From Piromyces finnis finn (taxonomy: Eukaryota; Fungi; Neocallimastigomycota), in contig MCFH01000009.1 of assembly GCA_002104945.1 (NCBI GenBank), forward strand, positions 186,001 through 250,000: a DNA stretch of 64,000 nt, in the 5' to 3' direction. The translations under genes were made by a program, and so were the position numbers. Below are positions 35,640 through 61,890 of this stretch, piece by piece. How positions within the stretch are numbered: position 1 is the first letter of the stretch; each line of letters begins with the position of its first letter. Under the pieces are notes generated by a model that had not been told where the DNA came from, did no database searches, and was given only the letters and a program-made list of their open reading frames with translations.

Positions 35640-36030
35640 CCTCTTGGGAACGTGCCCTCATTTATTTAATAAATGAAGTTTTTCAAGGGGCTCTACTCAT
35701 GCTCATGGTACTGAGAGAGTAGAAAGAATTAAATCCAAGTATTGCGCAATGGATGCTTGGTTAGTCTTTATTTGGAAATATTATTAGGACTAAGCTCATG
35801 GCATTGAGCGACCCTCTTTTCAAGGTCGCCGTGTGCAACAGCAAAAGAGGGTTGCCTTTTCTGAAAAAATAGTAAGAAAAGACAATAAATTTCGAGTTGA
35901 GTTGGTAACCTGAGTGACAGTTGTTATACCATTTTCTCATTACATATTTAACTAATCTTAAATATTAGTTACCTTTACCACTTAAATAACATAATATTAG
36001 TTTACAAACTTTCTTCTTCTTGTATTTATT
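35640..36030 (+). mobile_element. Solo 5' end of non-LTR family B (shared leader 35640-35811 plus B-specific UTR)
   Basis: Colinear with the reverse complement of 38440-38814; no ORF follows. Confidence 0.8.
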
Positions 36031-36127
36031 TAATTTGAAATATTACATTATATTAAGTGATAATATATATTGATATAATAAATAATAAATAATAATAATA
36101 ATAATAATATATATATATATATAAAAT

Positions 36128-38814
36128 AAAATAATTATTAAAGTTGCATAAAAGTTCAATAAACTCTGCAACTCGTATTGTGTGGGATTGGTCCCTACCT
36201 AATAAATTAAATGAAATAAAAAAGAGAAGTAACATCAGGTATGATAGTGTGGTGTCCACTAAACTCTCTCATGAGCTCATAATGTTTTCATTCAAAGAAA
36301 TACTAACATTGAACCCTGTGTACGGAACATTAGGAATGTTCCTTTGCCATATCGGTACGACGTCGGAGCTCTTGATTACATTAGGTGTTTTACTAAACCT
36401 ATCAAAAAGTAGCTTCCTAGAGCTACTAATAATAAGGATTGTTTTAGTAAGAAAAGACGCGAGACCTTCTACATATAAACATGAGACCCCGATGAACTGT
36501 AAAGCTGTTCATTCAAATGTCTTTGTTCCGCCTTATCGATTTGTAGCTCATCATAAGCTAAAGTTCCACCAAGAAGGAACGTAAAAATATAGTTATAAAT
36601 TGTTTTTCTTACTTCCGTTTCGGGGAGTAAGTATGTGATGAATTGATTATTGTATTTATTTTGAAAAAGGGTAAAAAGATTGTCAAGAAAGCTAAGTGAA
36701 GAAGCTCTGTATTCAGAAAATGTAGAACATTCTAATATCCAATAGTAAAAAGATTGTTCGTCATAACCACAACATGGACAGACACGAGGGCAGTCAGGAG
36801 TAACTCTATTACTGGCAATAGCAATTCGGGTGGTATTTTCATAACCGCATCGAATACGAATAATCCAGGTAATTCCTAAATTTAAGTGAGGTTTATTGAG
36901 ACCGATATGCATTAGGCGATTTGAATTAAGAAATTTGTTGTTAGTATATCTGAGGGCTTTACTTCCATTATTTAGGCTACTATTATTCCAATAATGTTCT
37001 CTAATAACTTCAGTACTTTTAATATTTATTTTCATAAGCTTCTTATGTAGTGAACAAGATTCTTTGGTCCAAGAGTAATGAGACATGGGAGGAATAGATC
37101 GGACGAGACCTTTAATAATACAATTTGATTTTCTCCATTTAACAAAACATTTCACTTGTTGCGCAGCACAAATACCTGAAAGGGTAGGAATCTTCATATC
37201 TCTTGTCAAAGCATACAGATTAATAAATGAATTTCGTTCAAAAACAAAATCTTTGCTATTAAAACTTTTATTGTGAAAGCTATTGACACTCCATAAAACA
37301 GCAGGTATTGATAAGAGATTGGACTCTTCTAGTTCTATTTTTGTTGGAACCAAGTAAAGGAGCATAATAAGAGACTTTGCTTAAAATATAAGAATGAATT
37401 ATTATTAGAGATTATTGAGAAAATCAAAATATTTACCACGTATACCTAATTTATATAACTTTGTAAGGATATTAAAAATAGGAACTGAGTCGTATGCTTT
37501 TTTAAGGTATAGAAAGGCAAATATTAATGGATTTTCCTTTAAATTTTCTTCTTTGACAGATTTCTCTAATGGAAATAAATAAGCTAATGCATTCTTCTTT
37601 ATTACAAAAACCAAATTGCTCAGTTCTGATAAAATTATGAAAAAGAATGTAATAGTATAAAAAATAATAATAGTAAAGTGGATATATTGAATAGTTATTG
37701 GATTATTTGTCAAACAATGTTTTACTTTTACTTGGAGAATAAAAAATATACTAAGTTGCTGAAAAACTTAGTATTTACTTTATTGAAGACTTTAAATTGG
37801 AAATAAATTTATATTCTGTCACTTTGAATTTCTGAGATATACCTGTAATTTGTAAACTTTATTTTTTTATTAGATTAATACTGTTTGTTGGTTGACTATT
37901 GTAATATGTTGATTCTGATTGTTGGATTTAAATAATCATAAATGTTAATTTATGATGAAGAAAAAGTAGTAAAAAGGTGAGAAGTTATTATACCATATTG
38001 CAAAGGATAAAGGATATAAAGAATTAAATAAAGAACATAATAAATTCTCAAAATAAAATTGAAACAAGAGTAGTATATATAATAAAAAACTAGGATACTC
38101 GATTTTCCAGAATTTAAGCTTTATTGTTAAAATAAAAAAAAAGAGAGTTTAATATTTACCATGAAATGAAATTCTACAATATACCTAAAAAATTATAAAA
38201 ATATAGAATAGAGATAGAAAAAGTGTACAAAAGAATGTTAGTAGAAAGAGATTCCTTGGAAAATTTAGAGTTTCAAAAAAAAAAAAAAATAAAATAAAAT
38301 AAAAAGTAAATATAGTGAAAAATAAAAAGATTAAATATGATTAAAAGTAATGATAGCCGCAATAATTACAAACTTGATTAACAATTAAACTATATAAGCT
38401 ATGAAAAATAAAAAATAAAATCAAATATATTCTTAAAACAACAATTAATACTACAGAATCAGAAAATTTGTAAATTAATATTATGTTATTTAAGTGGTAA
38501 AAATAACCAATATTTAAGATTAGTCGAAGATGTAAGGAAATGTGGTATAACAACTATCACTCAGGTTATCAACTCAAATCGAAACTTATTGTTTCAGAAA
38601 AGACAACTCTCTTTCGCTGTTACGCACTGCAACCATGAAAGAGGGTCGCTCAGTACCATGGGCTTAGTCCTAATAGTATTTCCCAATAAAAACTAACCAA
38701 GCACCCATTGCACAATACTTGGATTTATTTCTACTCTCTTAGTACCATGAGCATGAGTAAAACTCCTTGAGAAATTACATTTATTAAATAAATGAAGGCA
38801 CGTTCCCAAGGGGG
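36128..38814 (-). mobile_element. Non-LTR retrotransposon family B, internally deleted and frameshifted, both termini present
   Basis: Leader at 38646-38814. RT pieces EQFGFCNKEEC... and LKKAYDSVPIFNIL (37405-37713) join directly to the post-RT region. C-terminal CPRVCPCC...WILEC zinc-knuckle region. 3' end followed by TTTTA units. Confidence 0.88.
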
Positions 38815-39589
38815 AAACACATTTCCTTTTCATATTATTAATTTAAATAGATATCAAAAATAACTAACAATAATTAATGTTTAAAGGGAATTTATTTTCA
38901 TGCTTTTTATAAAATAATAATTAATTATATTGAATTCACATATAAACTCTTTTTATATTAATGTTACTAAAAATTAAATATCTATTAGTATTTCTAATAT
39001 TTTTTTATTTTATACATCTTTATTTTTTTTTTTTTTTTGTAAAGTATTATATTATAAATCAAATATTTCTTTTTATTGTTTAAACAACAAATTTTATTCT
39101 ATTTTTCTGCAGTTCAAATGAGTAATTATTTAAATATAATAATTGTCTTAATAATAAAAGCAATAAATCTAATTATTATCTTTTAAATATATTATTATTT
39201 ATATTTTTAATCATCAGATTATTAATAATTTATCTAAATAGATAAATTAATACTATCATTAATACCAAAACTAAGACTACTAAGAAGGCTACTACAAATA
39301 TCAATAAAGACTACTCTTTCATTATTAAATTTAAAAACGAAAAATAAAAAAGTTGATAATCCATCTAAAAATTAATACACCTTTTTCTTCAAAAATAAAA
39401 TCAACCTTTGACTCACCTTCACTTATACCAATCATTAAATCCAATAAGTACCTCCATTAATGAATACAGTGAATTTTATTATTATTATTATTATTATTAA
39501 TTTTTTATTATTAATTGTATTGTATTCATTACTTTTTATATTGATTTTATTAATATTATTTTGTATAAATATTCTATCATTCTATCGAG

Positions 39590-39890
39590 TTTTCTTAATA
39601 TTAATTGTAATCTAGTGGTTGTTCACCAAATTGATCATATTTATCATCATCACCTTTAGAGGTTTTATTTAGTAATGCTTCTTTAATGGCTAACATTTTT
39701 TTACGAATCCTAACTTGTAAGTCAGCTTGATCTTTATTAATTTGATTATTTTTTTTCTTGTTATAATAATTCTTTATTTAATATAGAAGATAAAACTACT
39801 GATAGTACAGCAACAGGAAAGGAAAGTTATATGGTATAATATTATTTTCATTGCTATTATTAAATGTTGTGTCAATACCCATGTTATCTT
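39590..39890 (-). pseudogene. Pseudogenic fragment of the C-terminal tail of the 42262-45017 LRR-TM family
   Basis: Aligns by eye to NMGINIPFNN...VAVPPV...KELLLQENNIQID..QAxLxxxIRKxMLA..., with an in-frame TAA and frameshifts. Confidence 0.8.
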
Positions 39891-60429: not shown

Positions 60430-61000
60430 TAAATAATCATAACATACACGTACAGACCTATTAAACAAAATAAAGAATTACCATTAGTTTTACAGAATAA
60501 ACAAGATTCCGACTTACATTGAAAAAGAAAATTAGAGATAATATTTCAATTAGGTCATCCGTATAAGGATTTCATAAATAGTCAAAAGCACTTTTTGTAA
60601 TTTTTATCACTTTGAGGATAAGATACATAAACTTTTTGTCTAAAGGAGCATTTTAGGTAAGCAGCTTTAATGTCTAATTGGTATTTTATTTAAATTTAGC
60701 AGCTACGGACAGGATAAGTTAATATGCCAACAATGTCTGATGTTGGTGAGTAAATATTGTCATAATTAATGTCTTATTTCTGTTTGTATCCTTTAACAAT
60801 TACTCTTGCTTTATAGGTTGATATTTTATTGTTTGTGTCGATTTTAATAATGAAAACACACTTTGTTGATATAACATTAATATTTTCCCAAATATTTTTG
60901 ATGAATACCATATCTACATTATTGTATAAGTTTGAAAGTTCACAACTTCTAAGAGCACGGCATGGTCTTTTATTATCATTTTTGTTATTATTTTCACTGT
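60430..61000 (-). mobile_element. Degenerate Ty1/copia RT N-terminal part (same element as 59110-59730)
   Basis: VISTKCVFIIK.D.N...YKARVIVKGYKQ...YDNIYSP, DIKAAYL, KSLYG, IGLYV (YVDD decayed). Confidence 0.85.
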
Positions 61001-61329
61001 TTTATTTGAAAATTTTTTGTTATAGTTGTTATAGTCATAATACAGTGTAATCATCTTCAAATATTCATCTTTATTATTTAATGATTATTTAAATTTTAAT
61101 TGAATTATAACTATAGTTAAGTTTGTATTGTTATAAACATCAATGATACTTTTATTCATTTATTTATTTATTTATTTATTTATTTATTATTATTATTATT
61201 ATTATTATTATTATTATTATTATTATTATTATTATTATTATTATTAATTTTTATTAATTGTATTGTTTTCATTACCTTTTATATTAGTTTTATTAATAAT
61301 TCTTTTATATAAACATTATATCACTCTAT

Positions 61330-61560
61330 CTAGTTTTCTTAAAATTAATTGAAATTTTGTGGTTGTTTACTAAATTCATTATATTTATCATCATCAATTT
61401 TAGAGGTTTTATTAAGTAACGCTTCTTCAATGGCTAACATTTTTTTTACGAATCCTAGCTTGTAATTCAGCTTGATCTTAATTAATTTGGCTATTATTTT
61501 CTTGTAATAATAATTTTTTATTTGATATAGGAGATAAAGCTGCCGATGGTACAGTGATTA
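61330..61560 (-). pseudogene. Second pseudogenic fragment of the LRR-TM family C-terminal tail, ending just before a family-A LINE
   Basis: VPSAALSPISNKKLLLQENNSQIN*DQAELQARIRK..., homologous to 42262-42480 and 39590-39800. Confidence 0.8.
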
Positions 61561-61720
61561 TAGGATTATTAAAATTTTAAATTTCCAAAAATTAGTCCCT
61601 CTTGGGAACGTGCCTTCATTTATTTAATAAATGTAGTTTCTCAAGGGGGTCTACTCATGCTCATGGTACTGAGAGAGTAGAAAGAATTAAATCCAAGTAT
61701 TGCGCAATGGATGCTTGGTG

Positions 61721-61890
61721 CCCTCTTAGGAACGTGCCTTCATTTATTTAATAATGGAGTTTATCAAGGGGGTCTACTCATGCTCATGGTACTGAGAGAG
61801 TAGAAAGAATTAAATCCAAGCATTGCGCAATGGATGCTTGGTTAGTCTTTAAGGGAAAATTATTAGGACTAAGCTCATGGTACTGAGCGA
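61721..61890 (+). promoter_or_regulatory. Hairpin-rich 5' leader shared by both LINE families (copies at 35640, 38814, 49605, 61597 partial, 61721)
   Basis: Complementary pairs read by eye: ccctcttgggaa/ttctcaaggggg, cttcattta/taaatgaag, tctactc/gagtaga, ctca-tggtac-tgag (twice), ccaagtat/atgcttgg around the palindrome attgcgcaat, ttagtc/gactaa. Function is inferred. Confidence 0.6.

Follow-up and report, generated by a model that had tools for sequence, protein, structure and literature searches.

A three-hairpin leader domain at the 5' end of LINEs in the anaerobic gut fungus Piromyces finnis is shared and exchanged between families

Introduction

Within a 64,000-nucleotide (nt) stretch of the genome of the anaerobic gut fungus Piromyces finnis (contig MCFH01000009.1, positions 186,001 to 250,000 of the forward strand; hereafter 'the window', at its full length), the same hairpin-rich leader of about 172 nt occurs five times, in association with sequences that belong to different families of long interspersed nuclear elements (LINEs). 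This raises the question of how elements with dissimilar bodies come to share one head, and of what that head does. The definition, protection and renewal of LINE 5' ends are poorly understood beyond mammals, R2 and trypanosomes, and in the literature we found no description of LINE leaders in Neocallimastigomycota.

The feature is real and well supported, as attested by its position, its fold and covariation, the discordance between leader and open reading frame (ORF), tandem arrays and 5' chimeras; its molecular role may comprise promoter and RNA-handle functions. The reading that we favour, and which we hold to be probable but by no means secure, is that the leader constitutes a portable 5' head unit of LINEs (promoter monomer and folded RNA handle in one) that spreads by template switching.

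Results

Leader-bearing LINE families

In the window, whose base composition is about 80% A+T, the 16-mer that starts the leader (up to two mismatches allowed) was found at five sites (35641+, 38812-, 49603-, 61599+ and 61723+), with 0 expected (100 shuffles). The five copies align across about 172 nt and part right after TGAGCGA, past which the sequences read TTAAAAAAC (type A) or CCCTCTTT (type B). A preliminary description of the window had placed the copies correctly and had recognised the A and B types; a third and commoner junction, type C (ACAGAGTTGAT), had escaped it.

The intact elements behind these leaders consist of a single long ORF (1496 amino acids (aa) in family A, L034:901-5391; 1416 aa in family C, L032:1532-5782; L numbers designate the loci studied) and are, by their domain content, L1-like LINEs that combine endonuclease and reverse transcriptase (RT) in one ORF. 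The C ORF matched the Pfam families PF03372 (Exo_endo_phos) and PF00078 (RVT_1), and in the A ORF only PF00078 reached the threshold. On sequence comparison we assign B to C as an older subfamily with an extra 88-nt module (B and C thus being subfamilies of a second family), so that the 'B protein' of the window is a C-family protein. The A and C proteins are 44% identical across 1137 residues, endonuclease region included, and the earlier characterisation of the A and B proteins as only distantly similar was therefore mistaken. At the DNA level, a default blastn comparison of A and C elements found only the leader in common (96.5% over 172 nt), to which a more sensitive search added a 674-bp stretch of the RT core (approximately 70% identical).

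Across the genome searched (56,455,805 bases, 232 contigs), the leader end ACTGAGCGA occurs at 362 sites (14 for a reversed-pattern control), 296 of which run on into family A; approximately 300 A copies and dozens of B/C copies, differing in age, carry the leader. The proteins of family C copies are 98-100% identical, and several of the ORFs are intact; families A and C both look active or recently active. The named protein relatives of the LINE ORFs belong to Orpinomyces and Neocallimastix. We also observed that family A elements very often sit right in a further A copy's poly(A) tail, forming head-to-tail LINE chains (L036, L047, L051, L052; window 46012-46040), and that the flank upstream of such chained leaders is GATGCCGTTAAAA(n), i.e. 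the family A 3' end.

The leader as the 5' terminus of the element

The 172-nt leader is the genuine 5' terminus of these LINEs, since it lies inside their target-site duplications: in L031 the duplication TTGTAAAA(n) encloses leader, body and poly(A), and in L036 an A(n)T duplication encloses four extra units together with the element (most other duplications are uninformative A-runs). Furthermore, all 47 distinct upstream junctions start at (C)CCTCTT following unrelated flanks. Together with the fold described below, the duplications bear out the earlier proposal of a discrete, hairpin-rich RNA module at the exact LINE 5' end.

Could the leader nevertheless lie outside the LINEs, as a repeated target sequence or as a host small-RNA gene that stands beside the insertions or was copied by them? 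Site-specific LINEs exist, and no LINE body follows the leader that starts at 35640. Fungal LINEs are moreover known to fuse to host RNAs such as WEIRD (PMC2104539). The enclosing duplications in L031 and L036 and the unrelated upstream flanks contradict this idea, and on these grounds we rejected it as extremely improbable. In addition, searches for tRNA genes in the window and around 29 loci detected none, and no Rfam family was matched at E <= 1 in window 30000-64000 or at E <= 10 in L036:100-1000 and L057:100-400, the best match of any kind being a microRNA model (26.5 bits, with a gathering score of 90). Among the first 100 leader-end sites listed, 21 were non-A, and seven of these were known C or B copies; the other 12 non-A places inspected comprised seven older, variant or C-type LINE leaders and five chance matches, and no free-standing leader gene was present among the non-A sites inspected. 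The suggestion that the module had been captured from outside LINEs thus found no support, as every copy inspected is a LINE 5' end.

Exchange of leaders between LINE families

Relatives were sought by scanning rumen metagenome contigs of the Joint Genome Institute (JGI), for which the first 500 residues of the C and A proteins were aligned to serve as the query. The scan yielded 39 loci, which sort by ORF identity, together with A and C, into three clades:

Clade I: C, L056-L065
Clade II: L066-L069
Clade III: A, L091, L074-L078

Leader-like sequence was identified upstream of the ORF in four loci, namely L069 (by profile search) and L057, L068 and L091 (by motif and then by covariance model). 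In the unfiltered covariance-model search the L057-type leaders were the top three matches (E 0.0015-0.016; the rest was noise), and with default filters the model missed them. A two-hairpin pattern scan of viral contigs gave no match. The part common to the P. finnis and metagenome leaders is limited to nt 1-122, a domain of three hairpins, over which the leaders compare as follows:

P. finnis A vs C: leader (nt 1-122) 98% identical, ORF 44% identical
L057 vs L091: leader (nt 1-122) 96% identical, ORF 43% identical
L057 vs L068: leader (nt 1-122) 89% identical, ORF 51% identical
P. finnis vs L057 type: leader about 54% identical, same-clade ORFs 65% (C-L057) and 61-64% (A-L091) identical

The leader variants group by source genome and not by LINE clade, from which it follows that leaders were exchanged between families. 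Within P. finnis no fixed difference separates A from C over nt 1-122, the only near-fixed differences being in the loop of the fourth hairpin. Since the leader is already present on aged copies of A and of B (about 10% decayed), the sharing is long-standing and maintained, and does not stem from one recent recombinant; a single A/B recombination would likewise leave unexplained the number of A and B/C copies in P. finnis, as well as the second leader variant found in three LINE clades. The view of the leader as a swapped module shared by divergent families was thus borne out, by exchange rather than by common descent. Vertical retention of a conserved leader ancestral to both families, with no exchange, could appeal to the same decayed copies and to the presence of the three-hairpin domain in all three clades, by which the domain as such is old. 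We regard it as exceedingly unlikely, given that leaders and ORF clades conflict twice, in P. finnis A/C and, separately, in L057/L068/L091, and that a constraint permitting some 45% change between variants cannot explain 98% leader identity at 44% ORF identity.

Fold and covariation of the leader RNA

As sense RNA, the 172-nt leader folds into five hairpins (H1, nt 1-51; H2, nt 53-84; H3, nt 96-121; H4, nt 122-153; H5, nt 154-170) at -51.9 kcal/mol (z = -3.8), and 0 of 200 shuffles fold as well; the antisense strand attains only -38.6 kcal/mol. Nucleotides 1-122 form the three-hairpin domain (H1-H3), in which H1 begins at the first bases CC(C)UCUU, H2 presents a six-base loop containing GUAC and H3 has the loop GCGCAAUG. 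The remaining nt 123-172 (H4, H5) are an extension seen only in P. finnis, and H5 looks like a copy of H2, because older variants read CTGAGCGAGTAG in both places.

Taken singly, the leaders of P. finnis, L069, L057, L068 and L091 all adopt this three-hairpin fold (z -3.1 to -4.0). MAFFT was unable to align H2 or the whole domain structurally, and the pair counts hence cover H1 and H3 only. For H3 (in a loop-anchored alignment) 92.6% of cells are paired and 6 of 9 pairs have changed on both sides, with 0 of 500 shuffles as good and slid controls at 26-51%; for H1 the corresponding values are 96.6% of cells, 5 of 11 pairs, 0 of 500 shuffles and 40-77%. In P. finnis the H3 stems are thus CCAAGUAU/AURCUUGG, and in the L057 type AACAUUAU/AUAAUGUU, on either side of an 8-nt loop that is identical across all lineages, and the six-base H2 loop with GUAC recurs in P. 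finnis, L069 and L057 on stems that differ in sequence. Within P. finnis, pair 101-116 is C-G, U-G or U-A and never unpaired, and variation at paired sites is half that at unpaired ones. The sense fold beats the antisense fold by 3.6-15 kcal/mol in all six leaders compared and includes G-U pairs in five of them; this greater stability indicates that the folded species is the sense RNA. Covariation, which the preliminary description had proposed as a check, is accordingly present in H1 and H3, and these comparisons of sequences show a fold under selection in the sense RNA.

Two further structures were noted in the metagenome loci. In L068:285-310 and L091:470-495, some 40 nt past the three-hairpin domain, a second and degenerate H3-like hairpin (loop GCGCAAUG or GCACAAUG) may represent a partial unit duplication analogous to H5 of P. 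finnis. In clade III, L074:146-190 harbours an H1-like hairpin that begins CCCUCUAUGGG, with H2 and H3 not clearly recognisable; this locus may carry a leader that has diverged further, and was not counted as a member.

Tandem arrays and 5' chimeras

The junction GCTTGGT-G-CCCTCTT (H3 end, a single G, H1 start) was counted 244 times genome-wide (0 for the control), part of these junctions at a spacing of 123-124 nt, and is present in both A and C copies. By this pattern the 1-122 unit forms head-to-tail arrays at the LINE 5' end that are inherited between copies. A second type of array, with a 137-nt period and units of nt 1-131, was observed in L036. The upstream pieces end at nt 61, 83-89, 109, 119, 122 or 131 and start at nt 1 or 53-60, and the piece downstream of upstream fragments always begins at the first base of the element.

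Other LINE sequences are also fused, in sense orientation, ahead of leader-bearing elements. Such 5' chimeras comprise C nt 1837-2152 before a family A element (L053:6696-7011, minus strand), A nt 3660-3762 (L046:1263-1365) and A nt 454-676 (L055:1047-1267) fused before the leader, the composite [1-122][A 1-331][1-122][A] (L048:968-1542) and, in L069, an endonuclease-coding LINE fragment before the leader. In a similar manner, the B module (two hairpins, the first starting CCUCUUU) is the 5' terminus of the element in L043-L045 and stands behind the 172-nt leader in the B copies of the window. A swap of leaders by splicing was considered and rejected, as there is no GT donor at any of the three junctions past TGAGCGA; the fact that the B sequence following the junction is itself a 5' terminus fits a template switch and not splicing.

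Template jumps have been documented for a fungal LINE (PMC2104539), and we infer from the arrays and 5' chimeras that reverse transcriptase switches templates here too. On reaching the 5' end of its template, the enzyme would switch onto another LINE RNA and thereby add whole or partial units ahead of the old end; through the same switching the head could pass between LINE families, whereby all families in one genome would end up with one variant.

Leader copies and other features of the window

The leader-related features of the window are listed below (identities of leader copies refer to the leader at L032:121-292, unless another reference is named):

35640..35811, plus strand: leader copy 1 (nt 1-172) in B-type context, 95% identical to the reference; H1 at 35640-35690, H2 at 35692-35723, H3 at 35735-35760, H4/H5 to 35809, second GTAC hairpin mutated
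35812..35899, plus strand: B module of two hairpins, the first beginning CCUCUUUU, closed by AAAAGAGG
35900..35998, plus strand: short C-like stretch of 5' untranslated region (UTR), 73.5% identical to family C nt 177-278
36023..38645, minus strand: B/C-family body headed by copy 2, 94% identical to C nt 3548-3787 and 4326-5731 (UTR 70-73%)
38646..38814, minus strand: leader copy 2, B-type, old, 89.5% identical to the reference
46012..49437, minus strand: old family A body with internal deletions and poly(A) tail, 88-96% identical to family A
49438..49605, minus strand: leader copy 3, A-type, old, 90.7% identical to the reference
61597..61719, plus strand: extra partial monomer, leader nt 1-122 (exactly H1-H3), 100% identical to L034 nt 1-123
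61721..61890, plus strand: leader copy 5, full length, A-type
61891..64000, plus strand: young family A 5' UTR and ORF start, running off the window end, 97.5% identical to family A nt 1-2278

The plus-strand element at 35640 is a 5' fragment of only about 360 nt, which is unusual, given that LINE copies are normally 5'-truncated. It faces the second B-type copy (window 35640-38814) and abuts the truncated 3' end of that minus-strand copy, which has no poly(A). The body at 36023..38645 has internal deletions and a broken ORF. The old A element (49605-46012) sits inside an older C-like 3' fragment, with flanks that match C nt 4989-5139 and 5193-5675, and the partial monomer at 61597-61719 directly precedes the full copy at 61721. 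The twin CTCA-TGGTAC-TGAG hairpins reported earlier were found again, the first loop being kept in all copies and the second mutated in the 35640 and 49605 copies, as was the 10-nt palindrome ATTGCGCAAT, which is mutated in the 38814 copy.

Three further observations concern the surrounding sequence. Part of the 3' UTR of family C (nt 5603-5675) matches window 45232-45529 and 51539-51750 at successive 5-nt offsets, which indicates a putative expanded pentanucleotide repeat that derives from, or resembles, the LINE 3' UTR. On the minus strand, window 42262-42849 contains a 195-aa ORF made up of about eight tandem Asn-rich units (NNNGNMGVNVPF). Finally, a splice-donor-like consensus (CAG/GTAAGT) is present in the family A 5' UTR, some 65 nt past the leader (window 61952-61960, and also L033-L035).

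Discussion

The leader as a probable portable head unit

According to the reading that we favour, the leader would be a portable head domain needed by every full-length transcript. As DNA, the unit probably works as an internal promoter in tandem arrays, by analogy with mouse L1 monomers; as RNA, it would provide a folded handle with invariant loops for a protein to recognise, either one supplied by the host or the LINE protein itself through its conserved N-terminal domain. The N-terminal 105 or so residues of the ORF (L032:1532-1850 and homologues) are conserved in all three clades, with R13, G14, S35 and W36 invariant, and their AlphaFold model (pLDDT, i.e. predicted local distance difference test, of 76) has a generic, ferredoxin/RRM-like (RNA recognition motif) beta-alpha-beta-beta-alpha-beta topology. 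The domain matched no Pfam family, and its model no specific PDB entry; we regard it as a candidate RNA binder and as a lead only.

Several points weigh against this reading. In it the promoter, the protein partner and the transcription start are putative. The covariation rests on few events, in only three independent leader lineages, and the evidence for H2 consists of single-sequence folds, as this hairpin could not be aligned structurally; furthermore, the GUAC of its loop is altered in L068 (AUAC) and L091 (GUGC). Mismatches in the middle of H1 are common in successful P. finnis subfamilies (A7-C45 in 6 of 15 A copies, U10-U42 in 9 of 14 C copies), and this part of the fold is therefore not strictly needed. 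A full-sensitivity run of the structure model over 16 metagenome loci, the majority of them with plenty of DNA upstream, matched L057, L068 and L091 alone, and even with L069 as a fourth carrier the domain is thus either not universal or diverged past detection. Metagenome contigs assembled over a shared repeat can, moreover, be mis-joined. Lastly, unequal recombination could instead build or lengthen the arrays.

A more far-reaching proposal, which we entertain as a speculative option of low though appreciable probability, is that the 122-nt domain represents a new class of cis-acting LINE RNA: its loops (GCGCAAUG and GUAC) would be read by the ferredoxin-like N-terminal domain or would pair RNA to RNA, and the handle would signal where the template ends and direct the switch to other handle-bearing RNAs. 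If this were true, the handle would behave as a selfish cassette, passing horizontally from one LINE clade of a genome to others. In a minority version of this proposal the domain would be a new self-cleaving ribozyme. At the opposite extreme, the unit could be purely a DNA promoter monomer in the manner of mouse and rat L1, its hairpins a functionless by-product of palindromic factor sites such as the bZIP-like ATTGCGCAAT. This palindrome, the heritable tandem arrays with a variably truncated first unit and the genome-specific variants (as expected of promoters tuned to host factors) are in line with such a monomer, and so are L1 5' UTRs at large, which are unrelated between families and in rodents are built of monomers (PMC5381506). 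We nonetheless think it unlikely that the fold has no function, because the stems change by compensatory substitution without keeping their sequence, whereas factor sites conserve sequence and not pairing. The G-U pairs and the energy gap moreover favour sense over antisense RNA, and the full 10-nt palindrome is absent from L057-type leaders.

Self-complementary loops open another route, in which GCGC in H3 and GUAC in H2 would form kissing-loop dimers (as does the dimerisation initiation site (DIS) of human immunodeficiency virus 1, HIV-1) and would favour template switching between the two RNAs. The invariant H3 loop, with GCGC in all lineages, exposes the palindrome (U)GCGCA on varying stems, and switches between RNAs are frequent; GUAC, on the other hand, occurs in only three of five leaders (P. 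finnis, L069 and L057), and a protein partner explains invariant loops equally well. We know of no LINE that needs dimeric RNA, and consider a dimerisation signal quite unlikely. A new ribozyme that cleaves itself at its 5' boundary, and so frees unit-length LINE RNA from read-through transcripts in the way of the HDV-like ribozymes (named after hepatitis delta virus) of R2 and L1Tc, would agree with the nucleotide-exact 5' ends at the foot of a hairpin, with the conserved loops, with the Pr77/L1TcRz precedent and with the frequent head-to-tail position of elements within one another's poly(A) tails, an arrangement that makes co-transcription likely. No ribozyme model of Rfam (HDV-like, hammerhead, twister, twister-sister, pistol or hatchet) was matched in the searches of window 30000-64000, L036 and L057, even at E <= 10 for the P. 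finnis and L057 leaders. On inspection, H1 could be P1, but the nested double pseudoknot of HDV-like ribozymes (P1, P1.1, P2, P3, P4) does not fit consistently across the variants: there is no conserved partner for P2 or for the P1.1 pseudoknot, in no leader does the segment after H2 pair consistently with the stretch after the 5' strand of H1, and in L057-type leaders H2 abuts H3 and leaves no room for a J4/2-P2 segment. The 244 identical internal junctions and the further 5' additions imply that RNAs with uncleaved unit boundaries were copied into new insertions. We therefore rejected HDV-like and other ribozymes (no Rfam match, no consistent pseudoknot) and hold self-cleavage, which had been proposed as a new ribozyme activity of the module, to be very unlikely.

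Comparison with known systems

The nearest counterpart is the trypanosomatid hallmark Pr77 (L1TcRz), a 77-nt 5' sequence that is common to several retroposon types (L1Tc, NARTc, ingi, SIDER) and acts both as promoter and as HDV-like ribozyme (PMC3383444, PMC4035085, PMC8190864). Like Pr77, which acts from inside the transcript, the fungal leader is a short sequence at the exact 5' end of different retroposon families in one organism group (A, B and C in P. finnis; L057, L068 and L091, from three clades, in the metagenome). The 122-nt unit, with its three plain hairpins and no ribozyme match, is set apart from the 77-nt, HDV-like Pr77 by length and fold; unlike Pr77, it forms tandem arrays, and its variants group by genome across LINE clades.

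In rodent L1, 5' UTRs are replaced between families and are built of tandem monomers (PMC5381506). Like those of mouse and rat, the fungal units measure roughly 100-200 bp and follow one another head to tail at the LINE 5' end, the first being truncated to a varying extent; unlike mouse monomers, they constitute an RNA domain that covaries and keeps its loops invariant, and the final one bears the extra H4-H5 tail. Mouse L1 monomers are GC-rich promoter DNA, and to our knowledge no conserved RNA fold has been reported for rodent monomers. With the HDV-like ribozymes of R2, RTE and related LINEs the leader has in common that a structured RNA starts at the first nucleotide of the element, and differs from them in that the double pseudoknot was not found in it and that its internal unit boundaries are inherited uncut.

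Dictyostelium TRE5-A, a LINE that targets tRNA genes, possesses a 5' module (the A-module, about 200 bp) that has promoter function and, like the fungal unit, can be duplicated. We are aware of no covarying hairpin domain reported for the A-module; the fungal elements further differ in belonging to another organism group and in having no tRNA gene nearby (29 loci and window). The chimeras of L053, L046, L055 and L048 are comparable to MGL-WEIRD-Mg-SINE of Magnaporthe (PMC2104539) and to mammalian U6-L1, in which a sense copy of a second RNA is likewise fused to a LINE 5' end in one insertion. As the acceptor in P. finnis is usually the leader of another LINE RNA, the outcome here would be that arrays are built and a functional head is transferred, and not the dead pseudogenes of the known chimeras.

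Significance

Taken together, the gut-fungus leader combines in one small RNA domain an exact 5' terminus, compensatory evolution across LINE clades, tandem multiplication and transfer between families whose proteins are only 43-51% identical. It thereby makes testable the replacement of 5' UTRs by template switching or recombination, the reading of a LINE 5' RNA structure by the element's own protein or by the host, and the existence of promoter monomers that double as RNA elements. Moreover, it provides a compact new RNA motif, absent from Rfam, that can be used to annotate full-length and potentially active LINEs in anaerobic gut fungi.

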